The position numbers and the translations under genes were made by a program. The notes beneath the pieces were generated by a model. That model did not search any database, was not told where the DNA came from, and was given only the letters and a program-made list of their open reading frames with translations. From Salpingoeca rosetta (Eukaryota; Protista; Choanoflagellata): DNA of 64,000 nucleotides. Each line of letters opens with the position of its first letter. Positions within the stretch are counted from its first letter, which is position 1. This document shows positions 1 to 9,230 of this stretch, in pieces. The stretch spans positions 1,622,316-1,686,315 of the forward strand of contig JAWQFM010000004.1 of the NCBI GenBank assembly GCA_033442325.1. The letters are read 5' to 3'.

Positions 1-325
1 GGTTTGACTTCACAGTCCTCCTTGCCAGCTTGCTACCCACCAAGAAGCCGCACACACAGTGAAACAACCAGCGCATTCCCCCCTTCCACAAGTTCAACAG
101 AGCGTGACATCAGCGCAACTCCTCCCCAAAACGCCTGAACACCTCCCTCCCACACATCAACAACAACAACACAATAACAACAACAACAACAACACCAACC
201 AACAACTTAAACAACAACTCTACAACTACATCCCCCCCCCCCTTCCCCCACCCCTCCTTCACTTCCCCACCCCTCCTTCACTTCCCCCACCCCTCCTTCA
301 CTTCCACCCACCCCCTCCCTCCACC

Positions 326-3300
326 ATGCACCACCACCACCACGTCCTCCCCTTCCTCTTCTACGTTTTCCTCCTCACGTCTCCTCTCCTAACCCACGCC
401 CAGAGCACTTCGCTGACTGCGCCGACCAGCACGCTGCAAGGCTGCACGTGTGCCGCGCAGTGGACGACGGCAGCGTCTGGCTGCGACACCACCATCCAGA
501 TTGCGGGTTGTGGCCTTGTTGAGCCGTGCGGCGGCCCCACGCCAACTTTTCCCACCGGCTACCCGTACCCTCCAAACACCCACTTCTCCTCTTGGTGCAA
601 GCTTGAAGCTTCGTGCGGCGCATTCGCTTCCTTCGACTACTGCGATCCGAGCAAAGGCGTGGATCTCAGCGCACGCGGCCTCTCAAGTGTCGCCGGGTTT
701 CGTTTTGGACCAAACGTCACGGATATCAACCTGTCAAACAACCCCATCGACGACGCTTCCTTGTGCGACGCCCACTGGCCGCCCATGCTCGCAAGCATCA
801 AGCTCAACAACATTGGGCTGCAGAACCTGAGCTGCCTCGCATCTCTCCCTGCCGGTGTCTCCATCGACATGAGCGACAACGCGCTGGGTGACGAACAGCT
901 CTGTTCTGCCCGCTGGCCGGTTGCCTTGGACGCCGTCACGATTCAAAACGCCGGTCTCACCGCTACCGCCATGGCCTGCCTCGTGCACGCGCCCTTGCCC
1001 AACGACACCCGTGTGCTCAGCCTTGACAACAACGATCTTACCATTGTTGCAGATGCAGCACTGCCATCTCAGTTGCAGGTGTTGTCCCTCCAGAACAACG
1101 CCATCGCAGCCATCTCCCAGAACAAGTGGGTGTTGACGCTTCAGATCCTGCGCCTGAATGGAAACCAGCTCACCTCCATCGCCAATGCGTCGTGGCCCTC
1201 GTCCCTGAAGACGCTCCAGCTCTACGCCAACCTCATCTTGTCCGCCGATGGGCAACAGTGGCCGTCAACCCTCAACATCCTCGACCTCGAGGAAAACCTG
1301 CTCACCACCCTCGACAACCAAGTGTTCCCCACCGCCCTCACATACTTCTACGCTCGATACAACGCCATCACCAGCATCACCAACATCACTTGGTCGCCAC
1401 ACATGGAGCACCTGTGGCTCAGCTACAACCACATCTCCGAAATCGACACGCTTCCAGCGAGTGCCACAAACCTGCGCCTGCAGAACAACACCATCTCCAC
1501 CATCCATGGCGTTGCGTGGCCAGCAAACCTGCAGTATCTTCGCCTGCAGCACAACCACATCTCCTCTCTCGACGCCCAGCAATGGCCAGCTGCCCTGGTC
1601 TACCTCGACATCGAAGGAAACAACGTCACCACACTCAGCAACCAAGTGTTCCCCAGCAGCCTCAACACGCTCTATGCCCGATTCAACGCCATCACCAGCT
1701 TCAACAATATCACATGGCCCTCGCACATGGCCAGCCTGTGGCTCAACTTCAACAGCATCACCTCAATCGACACCTTGCCCGCCAGCGTCTCCCAGCTCCA
1801 GCTCAACAACAACAACATCACAACCCTGGCCGGAGCGCAAATGCCAGTGTCTGCAACAACCATTCTCCTCTACAACAACCGCATTCCCGACATTCCCGTC
1901 AACCTCACGTGGCCCGTCGACCTGGAGGTGCTCTCACTCAACAACAACGACTTGACGTCGCTGGACCAGCAAGCCTGGCCGCCCACACTCCAAACGCTCG
2001 AAGTCAACAACAACCACATCACCACCCTCGCCAATCAAGTGTTCCCGGACACCTTGGTCGCGTTTCTCGCAAGCAACAACAACATCAGCAGCCTCTTCAA
2101 CGTCACCTGGCCGTCACCGCACATGCAGTCCGTCCTCCTCGGCAACAACTCCATTGCACGCATCGACACCCTGCCTGCGAGCGTGGCAAACCTTGACTTG
2201 AGCGGGAACACCATCACGAGCCTCCAAAACGTGTCATGGCCTGCGGACATGATCGAGCTGTCTCTGCGAGATAATTGCCTCACCAGCATCCAAGGCGTGC
2301 AGTGGCCGTCAACACTGACCCTGTTGCTGCTGGATCACAATGACATCAGCGACATATCAGGACAGGCGTGGCCCCCAACACTCCGGGAGCTCGACTTGCA
2401 GGCCAACAACATCAGCAATCTCGACAACCAAACCTGGCCCGAGACCATCACCCGCCTCTGGCTGCGGCACAACCGTATTGCCAGCATTGCGTCTCAGAAG
2501 TGGCCCGCCGCCCTTGAAGTGCTGTACCTCTCCAACAACCGCATCGCCAGCATTTCCACCAACGCGTCATGGCCACCAACGCTCCAGTATCTCTACTTGC
2601 ATGACAACGCCATCACCCACCTTGGCTTGCAGCAGTGGCCCGACACGTTGCGCGACATCTTCCTGGACGAGAACCGCATCTCCACCATCGACAATCAGCG
2701 GTGGCCACCAAACCTGAACCAGCTCCTCCTTGCCAACAACAGCATCACCAGCGTCACGGGGCAGGTCTTCCCTTCGGGGCTCACTGTCCTGTTGCTTAGC
2801 GGAAACAACATCAGTGACATCAGCAACCAGCGGTGGCCACCATCGCTCGTGACGCTTGGCCTTGACCGAAACAACATCACCAGCATTTCCAACCAGACGT
2901 GGCCAGCAGGTCTCACGCTGCTTGGCCTCTCCAACAACACCCTGGGCCCCGACGGCATTGTCGGCCAGACATGGCCACCTGCGCTTGACGCCCTCTTCCT
3001 TGACTACACAGGCATCAGCAACATCTCTGCGCAACAGTGGCCGCGCAACCTGACCATGCTGCGACTCGAGCACAACAGCATCGCCGACATCAGCAGCCAG
3101 TCCTGGCCGCCGGCAGTGAAGGTGCTGCAGCTCTCTGACAACAACATCCAGAACATCACCGCACAGGCGTGGCCAGACACCGTCACCACGCTTGCCTTGA
3201 ACGCCAACAGCATCTCTACGATCGACCAGCAGGCGTGGCCCAAGGCGCTACAAATTCTTCGCCTGCAGCAGAACGCCATCACCTCCATCATCAACCAGCG

Positions 3301-6300
3301 GTGGCCTGAAGGCTTGCGGGAGCTGCAGTTGCACGAGAATGGGATCTCGGCCGTTGGCAAGCAGCAGTGGCCACAGTCTTTGGTGACGCTGTTTCTTCAC
3401 GCCAATCGCATCACAAGGCTGCCTGCTGGGCCCGGCGCATGGCCGCCAAGTCTCATTCGCCTCACCCTCCACAACAACACCATCGGCTCCATCAACGAAC
3501 AGCATTGGCCACAAACCTTGGAAAGCCTCGTGCTCGTGAACAATAGCATCACCTCCTTGCCACAACGGCAGGGCTATTGGCCCAAGCCGCTGCGAAACCT
3601 GCTGCTTGCCTTCAACTCCATCACCAGCATCGACAATCAGGTGTGGCCACGTGGTCTGGAGACGCTCTTCCTGCACCAGAACAACATCACGCAGCTGCCA
3701 GTTGGGCCAGACGTGTGGCCTCCGCGGCTGCGCGCACTGACTCTCGGCTTCAATGCCATTGCCAGCATCCAACATCAGCAGTGGCCACCCACACTTGTTG
3801 ACCTTGAGCTGCAGCGCAACAACATCAGCTCCATCCAAGGCCAAGTCTGGCCACCGCGGTTGACGGACCTGTGGCTGCATAACAATCCGCTCAAGTCAAT
3901 TGAAGGGCAGCTCTGGCCCTCAACCTTGGAGATTCTGCAGCTTGCCGCGACGCAAATCAGCAGCATCGACACCCAGGTCTGGCCGGCAACCCTGAAAGAG
4001 CTGCGCCTGAGCGACAACGCCATTGCACACCTGCCAACCACCACGGGCTACTGGCCACGCGGGCTGGAGGAGCTTGACCTCGGTGACAACGACATCGACA
4101 GCATTGAGGGCCAGCACTGGCCCGGCTCGCTGCGTAGCCTCTCTTTGTCCGGCAATAAAGTCCGGAGCATTGTTGGGCAGGCATGGCCGATGCGCTTGGA
4201 GCACCTGTTCCTGAGCGTCAATTTCATCCCCAGCATTGAGGGGCAGCCGTGGCCGCGCGGTCTGACTCGTCTCTTCTTGTCGTCCAACGCCATCACAAAG
4301 CTGGGCACACAAGTCTGGCCGCCTGGGTTGCTGGAACTCAACTTTAACTCGAACCAGCTGACCTCCGTTGAAGGCCAGTCGTGGCCGACAACCTTGCAGC
4401 GACTAGGCCTGGCAAACAACAATCTGCAGAGGTTCGATGCTGAGGCCCTTCCAAATGGCCTGGAGGACCTCACGCTGTTTTCCAACGACATCAGCGTGCT
4501 CGAAAGCACTCAGTGGCCTTCCAACCTGAAGGAGCTGGGCCTCAGCTCGAACCGTCTGAGCGACGTCAGCTCGCAACAGTGGCCGCCTTTGCTGTCTGTG
4601 CTGAACCTACGTGACAACAAAGTCTCCAGCGTGGATGGCGTGAACTGGCCTCTCGAGCTGCGTCTTCTGCTCCTTGACACCAACCGCATCACCAGCATTG
4701 CACAGCAGACGTGGCCCTCGACTTTGACCCTGCTCACGCTCGGCAGCAATCGATTGACGTCCATCGCCAGCCAAGTCTGGCCGCGAGCTCTGCTCACGCT
4801 GCGGCTGGACAACAACGCCATTTCTTCCGTGGCGAACCAAACCTGGCCACCCTCGCTGAAGACCCTGTACCTTCAGCGCAACGCCATCGCATTTGATGAC
4901 GACCCTGCTGTCAATGCCGCGTTCCACACAGCGTCATCCCTCACGACGCTTGACCTCTCCTTCAACGACATCTCCAGTCTGCAGGGGGTCGTATTCCCGG
5001 ATGCGCTGCAACGGCTTGCCCTGAGAAACAACCGCCTGACCACACTGACGCAGAATGTGCATTGGCCACCACAGCTGACGCGTCTCATTCTCGACGCAAA
5101 CCCATGGGAGGCGCTGATCAAGAACAACATCCACCTACGTGCTGGCGACGCCATTCCTGAGCTCACGCGTGGCCTCCCCTGCACCCTCGAGCAGCTCAGC
5201 ATCGAGCATGGCGTGCAGCCATGGAGCTGCAGCCGCCACACCGTTGCCGCTGACATGTGCGACGATGACATGGTTGGCAGCTGTAGTATTGCAGGCATCG
5301 GCAAGTGCTCGTGGCCTTCCAATAGCAGCGCGGGCGCCACGGCATTGATGGATATGATGTTGGCGAACGGCAGCACCAGCACCAGCACCAGCACCAGCAG
5401 CACCAGCACCAGCAGCACCAGCACCAGCAGCACCAGCACCAGCAGCAGCAGTAGTAGTAGCAGCAGCAGCAGTAGTAGTAGTAGTAGTAGCAGCAGCAGC
5501 AGTCACCGGCAACAACAGCCACAACAGCCACAGCAGCAGCACATCTGGTCGTGTGAACTGACGGAAAGCGGACAGGCGCTCGTGTTGGCGCAAGACGCCA
5601 GCCGTGAGGTGATTGCTGAGAAGCAGGAAGACCAGACAAACGTGTTCTACGGCGTTGTTGGCGGCGCTTTCCTGTTGCTGTTTGTGCTCCTGGTTGCGCT
5701 GCACTCCAGATTCCAAGGTGTGAAGCGCATCGCACTGGTGCTGTTGATTCTCTTTGATGTGGCCACTGACTGGGGTTTCTGGGGCCTGGTGTTGACCACA
5801 GACGACTTCCGAGACAGCTACCAGTGCGAAACATCCTTTCCAGTGTACCGTTGCGAGGGCGCGGGTGCTGGCTTCTCATGCGACAGCTATGGCGACTTGA
5901 AGAGCGTGTGCGGCGGCCTGCCGTTTGCTCCAGCAGATGCAACAAACGAGTGCGAGTGCAACAGCAACACCTGCTTGTCCGGGTTTGTGTCCTTTGAGGA
6001 AACAGGCAGCTTTGTTGTTGTTGAAGATGCGTGTGACTTGTCACTGGACACGGACGACACTGGATTCGTCAAGTTCCAGCTGCAGTCGTGCACGACTTTT
6101 GGGTCTCTGGACAATTTCGCCAACCACACCTGCGGTTACCTAAACGCCAACGACCCGAATGCAACGGGCAGCAGCGAGTGCGAGTGCTATGGCGGGCAGT
6201 GTCGCGTGGTGCCCGGTGCAAGCGGGACGTGCCGCGGGTTTTACGGCGGTAACTACGAGGCGCTGGTGTGGGCGGCGTTTGCCTCCGTCGTTGTCGGCAC

Positions 6301-6853
6301 CGCCATCGCCTTGATTGAGGCGGGTCGCGAATGGCAGAGCCAGCGCCGCGTCCGCGTCCACCTCACGTCCCAGCTCGCTGCCAGAGACGGGGGCCAGCGT
6401 GAGCAAGAGGCGCAAGAGGCACAAAAGGATCAAGTTGAGCAAGATGGGCAAGATTACATGGATGTGGTCGAGGAGGATGGGGGTGGTCAAGACGACAAAG
6501 GTGCATCGTTTGACATCGGAGTCCCGTTTGACGCCTTTGGTCAAGATCGGCAGGCTGGCGACGGTGGGTTGGAGCTGGAGCCTGGTGGGGGTGCTGACGA
6601 TGGAGATGGCGAGGAGGATGGTGGAAACGGGGATGACAAGGGTGACAAGGTCGACAAGGTTGACAGGGTCGACAGGGTTGACATTGTGCTTGGTGTCCTG
6701 AGGCTGTTCCTGGAGGACTTGCCGCAGCTAGGTGTGCAAGTGATCTACCTCACCGTGCTCGGGCAGGAGCACGAGCCCACGGCGATTCTGAGCCTCGTCG
6801 TGACCTGTGTCTCCATTGTGGTGACGACCGTGTGGATGATGAGACAGTTGTAG
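326..6853 (+). CDS. Intronless giant LRR cell-surface protein: signal peptide, Cys-rich FN2/kringle-like cap, ~65 22-aa QxWP-type LRRs, Ser/Thr linker, then 5 TM segments with XK/Xkr-like motifs
   Basis: In-frame ATG at 326 followed by a signal peptide (MHHHHHVLPFLFYVFLLTSPLLTHAQ). Repeat consensus QxWPxxLxxLxLxxNxIxxI. C-terminal hydrophobic helices contain FDVATDW and FLEDLPQLGVQ. Stop TAG at 6851-6853. Confidence 0.85.
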   Translation: MHHHHHVLPFLFYVFLLTSPLLTHAQSTSLTAPTSTLQGCTCAAQWTTAASGCDTTIQIAGCGLVEPCGGPTPTFPTGYPYPPNTHFSSWCKLEASCGAFASFDYCDPSKGVDLSARGLSSVAGFRFGPNVTDINLSNNPIDDASLCDAHWPPMLASIKLNNIGLQNLSCLASLPAGVSIDMSDNALGDEQLCSARWPVALDAVTIQNAGLTATAMACLVHAPLPNDTRVLSLDNNDLTIVADAALPSQLQVLSLQNNAIAAISQNKWVLTLQILRLNGNQLTSIANASWPSSLKTLQLYANLILSADGQQWPSTLNILDLEENLLTTLDNQVFPTALTYFYARYNAITSITNITWSPHMEHLWLSYNHISEIDTLPASATNLRLQNNTISTIHGVAWPANLQYLRLQHNHISSLDAQQWPAALVYLDIEGNNVTTLSNQVFPSSLNTLYARFNAITSFNNITWPSHMASLWLNFNSITSIDTLPASVSQLQLNNNNITTLAGAQMPVSATTILLYNNRIPDIPVNLTWPVDLEVLSLNNNDLTSLDQQAWPPTLQTLEVNNNHITTLANQVFPDTLVAFLASNNNISSLFNVTWPSPHMQSVLLGNNSIARIDTLPASVANLDLSGNTITSLQNVSWPADMIELSLRDNCLTSIQGVQWPSTLTLLLLDHNDISDISGQAWPPTLRELDLQANNISNLDNQTWPETITRLWLRHNRIASIASQKWPAALEVLYLSNNRIASISTNASWPPTLQYLYLHDNAITHLGLQQWPDTLRDIFLDENRISTIDNQRWPPNLNQLLLANNSITSVTGQVFPSGLTVLLLSGNNISDISNQRWPPSLVTLGLDRNNITSISNQTWPAGLTLLGLSNNTLGPDGIVGQTWPPALDALFLDYTGISNISAQQWPRNLTMLRLEHNSIADISSQSWPPAVKVLQLSDNNIQNITAQAWPDTVTTLALNANSISTIDQQAWPKALQILRLQQNAITSIINQRWPEGLRELQLHENGISAVGKQQWPQSLVTLFLHANRITRLPAGPGAWPPSLIRLTLHNNTIGSINEQHWPQTLESLVLVNNSITSLPQRQGYWPKPLRNLLLAFNSITSIDNQVWPRGLETLFLHQNNITQLPVGPDVWPPRLRALTLGFNAIASIQHQQWPPTLVDLELQRNNISSIQGQVWPPRLTDLWLHNNPLKSIEGQLWPSTLEILQLAATQISSIDTQVWPATLKELRLSDNAIAHLPTTTGYWPRGLEELDLGDNDIDSIEGQHWPGSLRSLSLSGNKVRSIVGQAWPMRLEHLFLSVNFIPSIEGQPWPRGLTRLFLSSNAITKLGTQVWPPGLLELNFNSNQLTSVEGQSWPTTLQRLGLANNNLQRFDAEALPNGLEDLTLFSNDISVLESTQWPSNLKELGLSSNRLSDVSSQQWPPLLSVLNLRDNKVSSVDGVNWPLELRLLLLDTNRITSIAQQTWPSTLTLLTLGSNRLTSIASQVWPRALLTLRLDNNAISSVANQTWPPSLKTLYLQRNAIAFDDDPAVNAAFHTASSLTTLDLSFNDISSLQGVVFPDALQRLALRNNRLTTLTQNVHWPPQLTRLILDANPWEALIKNNIHLRAGDAIPELTRGLPCTLEQLSIEHGVQPWSCSRHTVAADMCDDDMVGSCSIAGIGKCSWPSNSSAGATALMDMMLANGSTSTSTSTSSTSTSSTSTSSTSTSSSSSSSSSSSSSSSSSSSSSHRQQQPQQPQQQHIWSCELTESGQALVLAQDASREVIAEKQEDQTNVFYGVVGGAFLLLFVLLVALHSRFQGVKRIALVLLILFDVATDWGFWGLVLTTDDFRDSYQCETSFPVYRCEGAGAGFSCDSYGDLKSVCGGLPFAPADATNECECNSNTCLSGFVSFEETGSFVVVEDACDLSLDTDDTGFVKFQLQSCTTFGSLDNFANHTCGYLNANDPNATGSSECECYGGQCRVVPGASGTCRGFYGGNYEALVWAAFASVVVGTAIALIEAGREWQSQRRVRVHLTSQLAARDGGQREQEAQEAQKDQVEQDGQDYMDVVEEDGGGQDDKGASFDIGVPFDAFGQDRQAGDGGLELEPGGGADDGDGEEDGGNGDDKGDKVDKVDRVDRVDIVLGVLRLFLEDLPQLGVQVIYLTVLGQEHEPTAILSLVVTCVSIVVTTVWMMRQL
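5370..5503 (+). repeat. Coding (AGC/ACC/AGT)n tract encoding a Ser/Thr-rich stalk of the LRR protein
   Basis: agcaccagcacc... then agcagt repeats, translated STSTS...SSSS. Confidence 0.9.
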
Positions 6854-6991: not shown

Positions 6992-7410
6992 CAGTGACTC
7001 TATTCCTGTCGTGTCTTTGGTGAACTTTTCTCTCAGTCTTCTACTTCTCTATTTTTGTTTCTCCTCAACTTACCCCTCCGGTACTCCTCGGCGACGGAAC
7101 ACTGAGCTGCCGCTTGCCGTTGTCGTAGTGTAGTCGTCGTAGGTTTGGACAACAGTTGTTGTCAAAGCGCGCTCTCCATGAAGAAGGTGCCAATGTATCC
7201 TGAAGTCCTGAAGTCCTTGTGGCAGGCGCTTCTCTGCTTCTCTGCTTCTGCGCTTGTGACTTTGTGAGTTGTGTTGAGGTTTGAAAGGAGTGCGTGACGT
7301 TGACAAGTGGTCGTATCTTCATGTAGTTGTCAAAACCCTCCAAAACAGATCCAGTCAAGACGAAGAGCTTCTGTCATCAGGACGACCCAGACACTCACAC
7401 ACTCACAACG

Positions 7411-8790
7411 ATGTCACGCTTCTTTCTTTTCTTTTTCTGCTTGACCCTCACCCTTCTGATGGTGTCCTCGTATGTACTGCCTCATGTTCTCTGCAGTGCA
7501 CAAGCAGTCATTGAGGAGGATGCACTGGGCTCATTGCACATCAACACGAGTGACCCACAGCAGCAAAGGATTTTCTTGAATGGGATTGACGTTGATGCTA
7601 TGTTGCACGCGCAGCAACGCACCATCAACGCGTACCAGGAGCTGCTTTCCGCTCAGCAGAGCATGATCGAAGCGCAGCGCGACATGTTGCAAAGTCAGCA
7701 GCACACGATTGAAACTGTACAAGCCGAAGGACAAGCGCTGAGCCAACAACTTGCAGCGCAATTGACGACCAACCGAGACCTTGAGAGTAATGATGCTGTG
7801 CTTCGCAGGCGACTGTGCGCCAATGGCGTGGCACCAAAGTCAACCACATTTAAGGTTGGCACTAACGCAAACCCAGAATGGTTTGGAGCTGTTGTCGGTC
7901 CGGATGGCCTCATCTATGGGATCCCGTTTCGATCAACGTCTATTCTTATTGTTGACCCCGTCACCCACACCGCAAAGAAGAGCGGGCACTTCACGGGTGA
8001 CTTGAAGTGGGCGCATGGCGCTGTCGCCAACGGTCTCATCTTCGCGTTCCCATTCAAGTCGTCTGCTGTCCTCATCATCAACCCAAGCAATGGAGCTTTG
8101 ACGACTGACACTTCGAGCATTTCTGGGCTTCCAGGGAACAGCAAATGGTCCGGTGGTGCCTTGGCGCGTAATGGGCTGATTTACGGCACACCATGGAACG
8201 CGGCGTCGGTGCTGATCATCAATCCGAGGACAAGAACAGCAGATACAACCTCGATTTCTGGCCTGGGAGGTGCCGAAAGCAAGTGGCATGGCGGTGTGGT
8301 GGGACCCGATGGTCGCATCTTTTGCGTTCCGTTCAATGCCAAGGCTGTTTTGATCATCAACCCAAAGTCCAATGTGGCCGATACCACCTCGCTTGCTGGT
8401 CTGGGATCCGCCACTTCAAAGTGGTTTGGAGGAGTCCTTGCTCGTAATGACCTCATCTACGGAATTCCTGCAGGCTCACGGTCGGTGCTGATCATAAATC
8501 CCAAGTCGCTGACAACCAACACAGGAACTATCAGCGGGTTACCAAGTCTCGGAAACAAGTGGCACGGCGGGGTGCTTGCCTCCGACGGCCGCATTGTGGC
8601 GATGCCGTTCACCGCACAATCGCAATCCGTTCTCATTATCGATCCTGCCACAAATACCGTTGATATGACTACGTTCACTGGTTACCGCGAAGGCGGCAAA
8701 TGGAAGGAACCTGTTCGAGCAAGCAATGGGTTGATCTACGCTGTTCCCTACTTTTCCAGGAACGTTCTCGTTTTGGATCTTGGCTGCTGA
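7411..8790 (+). CDS. Intronless secreted protein: signal peptide, short beta motif, Gln-rich coiled coil, 7-bladed beta-propeller
   Basis: ATG 7411 starts hydrophobic MSRFFLFFFCLTLTLLMVSS. Heptad Q/L-rich segment. Seven repeats of (K/E)WxGGxxxx(D/N)GxIYxxPxxxxSVLII(D/N)P. Ends LGC-stop. Confidence 0.8.
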   Translation: MSRFFLFFFCLTLTLLMVSSYVLPHVLCSAQAVIEEDALGSLHINTSDPQQQRIFLNGIDVDAMLHAQQRTINAYQELLSAQQSMIEAQRDMLQSQQHTIETVQAEGQALSQQLAAQLTTNRDLESNDAVLRRRLCANGVAPKSTTFKVGTNANPEWFGAVVGPDGLIYGIPFRSTSILIVDPVTHTAKKSGHFTGDLKWAHGAVANGLIFAFPFKSSAVLIINPSNGALTTDTSSISGLPGNSKWSGGALARNGLIYGTPWNAASVLIINPRTRTADTTSISGLGGAESKWHGGVVGPDGRIFCVPFNAKAVLIINPKSNVADTTSLAGLGSATSKWFGGVLARNDLIYGIPAGSRSVLIINPKSLTTNTGTISGLPSLGNKWHGGVLASDGRIVAMPFTAQSQSVLIIDPATNTVDMTTFTGYREGGKWKEPVRASNGLIYAVPYFSRNVLVLDLGC

Positions 8791-8810
8791 AGTGCTGACT
8801 CAACCTGTTA

Positions 8811-8872
<62 letters not shown>

Positions 8873-9230
8873 TGTGAGTGTGTGTGTGAATGAGTGAGTG
8901 AGTGAGTGAGTGAGTGTGTGTGTTTGTGAGAGAGAGTGTGTGTGAATGAGTGAGTGAGTGAGTGTGTGAGTGTTGTCGATTTTGCACCCTTCATGATTGG
9001 CGTCACTTGCACCCGAGACTGAACTGTTCACGCAATGTGACGAGCTTTACTTTCTTCAATCGCAAATCAAGACACAATGGCACTCTTGGCCAGTGACGTG
9101 ATCAAACAAGTGCGGCTGGCTCTCAAGCCATGCCTGGGCCAGACAAACACACATACACGTACGAACACACACACACATACACACACACACCGACAACCAA
9201 CACTGCAAAACATCTCAACAGAACGGCTTG

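Follow-up and report, generated by a model that had tools for sequence, protein, structure and literature searches.

When animal cells die, Xkr proteins expose phosphatidylserine on them as an 'eat-me' signal; their mechanism of lipid transport is still debated, and we know of no account of their evolutionary origin. XKR9, Xkr8 and Xkr4 consist of two related repeats, N-terminal (ND) and C-terminal (CD), each with four transmembrane (TM) helices and additional, partly inserted helices (PMC8298096). Their TM3 has a kink at a conserved PQL and is hydrophilic enough to escape hydropathy methods; the ND has a cluster of acidic residues, contributed by TM1 and TM3, that is 'strongly conserved throughout the family' (PMC8298096). 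The acids are D125, D129 and E313 in hXkr4, where P316 breaks TM3, and D26, D30 and E141 in hXkr8; they line an ND vestibule that can open outward and draws in cations, and that is correlated with membrane thinning and important for scrambling (PMC12334663). Here, we describe a gene of the choanoflagellate Salpingoeca rosetta, found in a 64,000-nucleotide stretch of contig JAWQFM010000004.1 (the window, throughout), whose predicted product joins a giant array of leucine-rich repeats (LRRs) directly to a small polytopic membrane module. We consider this module to be probably a distant homologue of the Xkr N-terminal four-helix repeat.

The first-pass annotation of the window had read the protein as an LRR ectodomain fused to one half of an Xkr protein. 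The parts that it named, namely the LRR array, an anchor, a helix with FDVATDW, a Cys-rich loop, an acidic loop and the last helices, are all present in the order and at the places it gave. We examined the module as window positions 5642-6850 (403 amino acids, aa). An anchor helix, TM0, would take the chain from the outside to the cytoplasm, and four helices, A to D, follow it. Because a signal peptide and the anchor helix lie upstream, helix A is expected to begin on the cytoplasmic side, with the Cys-rich, glycosylated loop behind it lying outside. The AlphaFold2 model of the module has a predicted local distance difference test (pLDDT) score of 78, rising to about 90 in the membrane helices. 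The protein ends in ...VWMMRQL, two residues past helix D.

The likeness to the Xkr ND is one of order, orientation and residues. In hXkr8, rXKR9, hXkr4 and CED-8, as in the module, there are four helices in the same order and, by inference, in the same orientation, with a cytoplasmic N-terminus and the first helix running from inside to outside. Helix A has an acidic pair in mid-helix, as Xkr TM1 does (Asp1811 at 5756-5758 and Asp1815 at 5768-5770, then Trp1816). Helix C is hydrophilic and has a Glu three residues before PQL (Glu2130 at 6713-6715, then Asp2131, Pro2133 at 6722-6724 and Gln2134). The three acids thus stand on the first and third helices with the spacing that they have in Xkr proteins (D-x3-D; E-x2-P-Q-L), and hydropathy overlooks the third helix in the module just as it does in XKR9 (PMC8298096). 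The first-pass annotation had recognized both motifs, but it had placed the PQL at the entry to TM3, whereas it belongs to the kink in the middle of that helix.

Among Pfam families, XK-related (PF09815) is the only membrane family that recurs in members of the family described here, and it always matches through profile positions 120-177, precisely the stretch of the profile with the Glu and PQL helix. For the window protein it gives 14.4 bits with the whole module and 18.5 bits (E 0.0011, profile positions 125-175) with the last two helices alone. Relatives score 22.5 bits (E 6.4e-5) for L003, a paralogue in the same genome, 14.7 bits for a second paralogue, L002, and 13.6 bits for P0022; the next-best family in the scan of the paralogues has an E-value of 0.029. 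XK-related, which the first-pass annotation had named for comparison, is the best and only recurrent family for the last two helices, but its score for the window lies under the gathering threshold of 24.8 bits.

Structural comparison also brings up this family, among others. AlphaFold2 models of the window module and of P0020 (pLDDT 74), a relative of 212 aa that consists of the four helices alone, without LRRs or Cys loop, were compared with 48,161 PDB representatives using an exhaustive aligner. XKR9 and XKR4 occupied ranks 2-17 of the 48,161 chains, tied with generic helix bundles. The matched part was the Xkr ND in all four alignments, and the structure-based identity was 19-20% for Xkr chains versus 2-14% in the other rows. 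The alignment ranges against hXkr4 are 58 to 110 for the window model and 18 to 106 for P0020; if the helix is aligned without gaps, the two Asp would fall exactly on D125 and D129 of hXkr4. A language-model look-up of P0020, considering named clusters only, gave XK-related as the sole Pfam family, with a score of 0.76, which we treat as a lead only. The structural matches also included the DHHC palmitoyltransferases Erf2 and ZDHHC9; we rejected this assignment, as the cytoplasmic loop of the module has no DHHC Cys-rich domain.

The module is part of a wider family. When 1.84 billion representative proteins were scanned exhaustively with HMMER, using a profile of the four genome copies, only 22 relatives emerged at E<=0.001. 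All of those whose source is named are choanoflagellate, from Salpingoeca infusionum or Bicosta minor, which represent the two main orders of the group. Word-index searches, one with P0020 and one with the alignment A3, turned up nothing outside this family. An LRR array followed by the module is the commonest make-up among members. Since P0020 consists of the bundle alone, we regard the four-helix bundle as the autonomous core of the family, to which ectodomains have been added. The first-pass annotation had staked its reading on conservation of the two motifs among paralogues, and for most of their residues this is what is seen, D-x3-D-W and E-D-x2-Q both being almost invariant. The pattern D-x3-D-W-[AGS]-F occurs in 15 family proteins and is invariant in the four genome copies, while P0013 spans the region and is, by eye, degenerate there; E-D-x2-Q is invariant in A4, the alignment of the last two helices. 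As the module recurs in four further loci and 22 proteins with its motifs almost unchanged, neither it nor the gene can be put down to chance. This is a real, constrained gene, and it encodes a type of cell-surface receptor seen so far only in choanoflagellates.

Two considerations favor homology with Xkr proteins. Searches of very large libraries by four partly independent methods converge on one family and on one and the same half of it, and the residues concerned are those that each family conserves most. Homology and architecture taken jointly, the best explanation is that the protein is an LRR-fused, one-repeat relative of Xkr, to which we give somewhat better than even chances. This description is likely but not proven, and if the resemblance is convergent, the protein represents a new lineage-specific receptor family instead.

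A number of observations weigh against homology. No family member reaches the Pfam cut-off, and the members lacking the full EDxPQLxVQ string have no Pfam match; nor does the DxxxDW helix taken alone in any of ten members. The Pro of PQL is kept in only about half of the family, being replaced otherwise by S, A, T, V or I. Profiles of the family (A2, A4) retrieve no Xkr chain from the PDB sequences at E<=10, and phmmer and profile searches of those sequences with the module, P0020, A2 and A4 returned only noise, such as YbbJ, antibodies, PRA1 and TMEM87A. Foldseek, which the first-pass annotation had suggested as a check, found no match in the PDB at E<=0.001 for either model. The Atlas shape search contained no Xkr match, an XKR8 chain is in neither of the best-50 structural lists, and the Xkr chains that are listed do not score above generic bundles. 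With the whole window module, the Atlas language-model look-up gave unnamed clusters only (0.76-0.81). The protein has only its anchor and four helices; the second Xkr repeat, the re-entrant helices IH1-IH3 and the caspase-cleaved tail are all absent, and the B-C loop of P0020, with 5 residues, is too short to hold IH1 and IH2. The half-Xkr reading is thus backed by several agreeing lines, each of which stays below its threshold. With one repeat, no re-entrant helices, no regulatory tail and a sub-threshold score, the module is not a member of XK-related as currently defined.

The alternative that fares best under these observations is a lineage-specific four-helix module, unrelated to Xkr, whose DxxxD and EDxPQ motifs arose by convergence. 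Its buried acids would then assemble with a basic partner membrane protein or hold a structural cation, and it would signal through its variable cytoplasmic parts: the acidic loop, SH2 domains and, in some members, a conserved tail. All the Xkr similarity is sub-threshold and concentrated in one helix, the reverse profile searches fail, Foldseek is silent and the structural scores lie within the range of generic bundles. The family is also confined to choanoflagellates, and the SH2 domains of one member and the tail of some others would suit a scaffold-type receptor. In P0004, a 1444-aa protein of Bicosta minor, two SH2 domains follow the module at residues ~1200-1400 (Pfam SH2 E 4e-18), which ties at least one member to phosphotyrosine signalling. 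The first-pass annotation had noted the lack of any kinase, TIR or G-protein-coupled receptor (GPCR) output; this holds for the window protein, in which Pfam finds none of these domains (TIR and kinase none at E<=1), but P0004 shows that it cannot be extended to the whole family. Convergence, on the other hand, would have to produce three acids and a Gln at the same spacing, on equivalent helices and in the same inferred topology. It would also have to account for XK-related being singled out by three methods from ~24,700 families or 48,161 chains, and for an identity that, at 19-20%, is well above that of the other rows. We regard convergence as rather unlikely.

If the module is instead a relative of the Xkr ND, a possible mechanism can be outlined. 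The giant LRR solenoid stands on a mucin-like stalk and is held by one anchor helix, with the four-helix bundle, the conserved core, directly behind that helix. By analogy with hXkr4 and hXkr8, the acid triad would most likely line a polar vestibule that faces the outside, attracts cations and perturbs the outer leaflet of the bilayer or binds an ion. The Cys-rich loop domain and the juxtamembrane segment, both above the vestibule, could couple the bundle to the LRR ectodomain, with gating by a ligand. Since even the stand-alone form retains these invariant acids in mid-membrane, the bundle presumably acts in the membrane beyond anchoring. Scramblase activity itself, argued from the Xkr analogy, is doubtful. 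Still more speculative, and in our opinion improbable, is the idea that the half-Xkr is the single four-helix unit whose duplication gave the eight-helix animal scramblase fold, or else a product of fission. In choanoflagellates it would be a lipid-scrambling or membrane-thinning unit, alone or dimeric, switched by a ligand on the LRR and Cys-loop ectodomain. A homodimer prediction with two copies of the module (residues 35-437 of A2) scored 0.00, which speaks neither for nor against dimerization.

Were the half-Xkr switched by a ligand in this way, the receptor would act directly on membrane lipid asymmetry or ion binding, without phosphorylation as its output. Quite apart from this, the fusion to an LRR array of pattern-recognition size defines a receptor class without counterpart in animals or plants. 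The module could serve to test whether the N-terminal vestibule and acid triad are enough to thin the membrane or scramble lipids, an idea put forward in the hXkr4 work, and it would also suggest how the two-repeat Xkr fold arose. S. rosetta, as a genetically tractable species that responds to bacterial cues, may allow the idea to be tested. No paper that connects Xkr proteins with choanoflagellates, or that describes an LRR-plus-module architecture, came up in full-text literature searches. A six-frame search of the 55.4-Mb genome with PF09815 gave no match at E<=10, which is not proof that S. rosetta lacks a canonical Xkr.

The window protein departs from Xkr proteins in more than its single repeat. 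It has a 152-aa Cys-rich insert between its first and second helices, where XKR9 barely protrudes (PMC8298096), and an extra anchor helix and an LRR ectodomain of ~1750 aa precede the module. This insert contains 14 Cys, two NECEC motifs and two N-x-T sites for N-glycosylation. Its Cys and NECEC columns are conserved in the family, its modeled strands have pLDDT values of 64-90, and weak matches to EGF_STAB1-2 occur in 4 of 19 members. The cytoplasmic loop that joins helices B and C differs among members in sequence and in length, from the 5 residues of P0020 through ~10-20 aa in P0003, P0004 and P0006 up to ~115.

A Cys-rich first outer loop, in a bundle of four helices, might also suggest a four-pass protein of the claudin, tetraspanin, pannexin or LRRC8 kind, serving adhesion or forming a large-pore channel. 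LRRC8 (SWELL1) in particular combines LRRs with a four-helix, pannexin-like membrane domain and Cys-containing outer loops. The LRRs of LRRC8, about 17 in number, are C-terminal and cytoplasmic. Those of the window protein are N-terminal, extracellular and ~60-65 in number, and it has no sequence match to LRRC8. Pannexins are among the structural matches, with root-mean-square deviations up to 5.8-7.4 A. As a whole, the four-pass families match no better by structure than Xkr does and at lower identity (2-10%), and none of the 19 members has a Pfam match to claudin/PMP22, tetraspanin, pannexin or innexin at E<=10. To our knowledge, the claudin, tetraspanin, pannexin and LRRC8 families have no invariant mid-membrane acids. 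The Cys loop, moreover, does not belong to the core of the family, since the stand-alone P0020 has none. We consider a four-pass protein of this kind very unlikely.

The ectodomain, for its part, resembles those of plant receptor-like proteins and animal Toll-like receptors in its large outer LRR solenoid, Cys caps, stalk, anchor and pattern-recognition size. Those receptors are single-pass and signal via TIR domains or partner kinases, whereas here there are five helices and, by Pfam, neither TIR nor kinase. The gene occupies window positions 326-6853 on the forward strand (2175 codons), within a frame open from position 2 to 6853, with no stop from codon 3 on. A CT-rich leader precedes the first Met, and a hydrophobic signal peptide follows it. 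A strict pattern recognizes 57 LRRs, most often spaced 22 residues apart. When double-length gaps are counted this corresponds to ~60-65 repeats, in agreement with the ~65 of the first-pass annotation. Pfam identifies LRR_8 (E 1.2e-51 and 2.3e-50), LRR_4 and LRR_9 in the array, and LRR families are the only ones over the first ~1770 residues. The Cys cap behind the LRRs also precedes the module in the paralogues and in P0001 and P0003, and the juxtamembrane segment is helical in the AlphaFold2 model (helix 9-17/19-54, pLDDT 73-90). The features are listed in the Table.

Table. Features of the LRR-plus-module gene in the window
Feature	Residues (aa)	Window position	Strand	Basis and remarks
Start codon and signal peptide, MHHHHHVLPFLFYVFLLTSPLLTHA	1-25	326..400	+	First Met; hydrophobic stretch (KD 1.66) ending THA/QS
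Cys-rich N-terminal cap before LRR array	26-112	401..661	+	Translation; without Pfam family
LRR solenoid, ~60-65 repeats of 22 residues	113-1588	662..5089	+	Strict pattern and Pfam
Cys-containing cap after LRRs, LDANPWEALI ... CSWPSNSS	1589-1681	5090..5368	+	Translation
Ser/Thr-rich stalk with short poly-Gln stretch	1682-1738	5369..5539	+	Translation
Juxtamembrane segment, W-x-C-x-L-T-x-x-G-E	1739-1772	5540..5641	+	Family-wide conservation in alignment A2
Anchor helix TM0	1773-1794	5642..5707	+	Hydropathy peak 2.61; helix in model
Helix A, RIALVLLILFDVATDWGFWGLVL, with FDVATDW		5726..5794	+	Proposed equivalent of Xkr TM1
Outer loop domain, 152 aa, partly beta		5795..6253	+	Between helices A and B
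Helix B, YEALVWAAF...	1977-2001	6254..6328	+	Hydropathy 2.33; helix from model position 239; proposed equivalent of Xkr TM2
Acidic disordered cytoplasmic loop (~115 aa)	2002-2118	6329..6679	+	pLDDT 40-52
Helix C, LRLFLEDLPQLGVQVIYL, hydrophilic, with LEDLPQLGVQ		6680..6763	+	Proposed equivalent of Xkr TM3
Helix D	2152-2173	6779..6844	+	Hydropathy 2.29; model helix 413-436, pLDDT ~90; proposed equivalent of Xkr TM4
Stop codon		6851..6853	+	Translation

In the S. rosetta genome, in which the window lies on contig 4, the module is found in three further very long open frames (3357, 2505 and 1845 aa), with identities of 95%, 58% and 36-38%; in all three it comes after LRRs. The 95% paralogue, L002 (G000:C4:1059700-1063905), lies ~0.56 Mb upstream on the same contig. 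Its DNA is identical to that of the window over the anchor helix and helix A, and its extreme C-terminus differs (...TWMLKKCCGCCAGERQEL). In one public run of uncertain type, contigs follow the window over 5540-6826 and then pass into L002; this junction of window sequence with the L002 ending points to gene conversion or to a chimeric assembly. Between the window copy and L003, the 58% paralogue, the ratio of nonsynonymous to synonymous substitution rates (dN/dS) is 0.17 overall, 0.12 in the Cys loop and 0.13 in helices C-D, with synonymous sites near saturation. Between the two recent 95% copies it is 0.68 overall and ~0.9 in the cytoplasmic loop, with too few changes to be useful. That the locus is silent or decaying, or the fusion an artefact of assembly, might be argued from the switch of those contigs near the 3' end, from the ratio between the recent copies and from the failure to place any read of three raw RNA-seq runs (which counts as no test of expression), but it is scarcely credible given an intact 2175-codon frame with signal peptide and stop, the same LRR-plus-module order in the other long frames and in transcriptome-derived proteins of two other choanoflagellate species, and the low ratio against L003.

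A profile of the last two helices found a fifth, spliced member on contig 3. One exon (1554350-1555123, minus strand; L015 ~8351-9124) encodes ...YLFDVATDW..., a smaller Cys loop and helix B, and another (1553313-1553780, minus strand; L015 ~7314-7781) encodes ...FLLFEDLPQIIIL... and ...FLLFEDLPQIIILIRY.... With its exons read one by one, this member apparently has no LRR array.

Two further features deserve mention. The LRR array of the window protein is built from a regular 22-residue repeat of an unusual type, nearly every copy of which has a W-P pair (N-x-I-x-x-I-x-x-Q-x-W-P), and the same repeat type occurs in the S. infusionum and Bicosta relatives. In one subgroup, L004 (G000:C6, minus strand), P0001 and P0016, an extra conserved tail follows the last helix (FLANR...L-I/L-K/R-H/Y-G-G...GK...) and contains two further hydrophobic segments, the last one at the very C-terminus.

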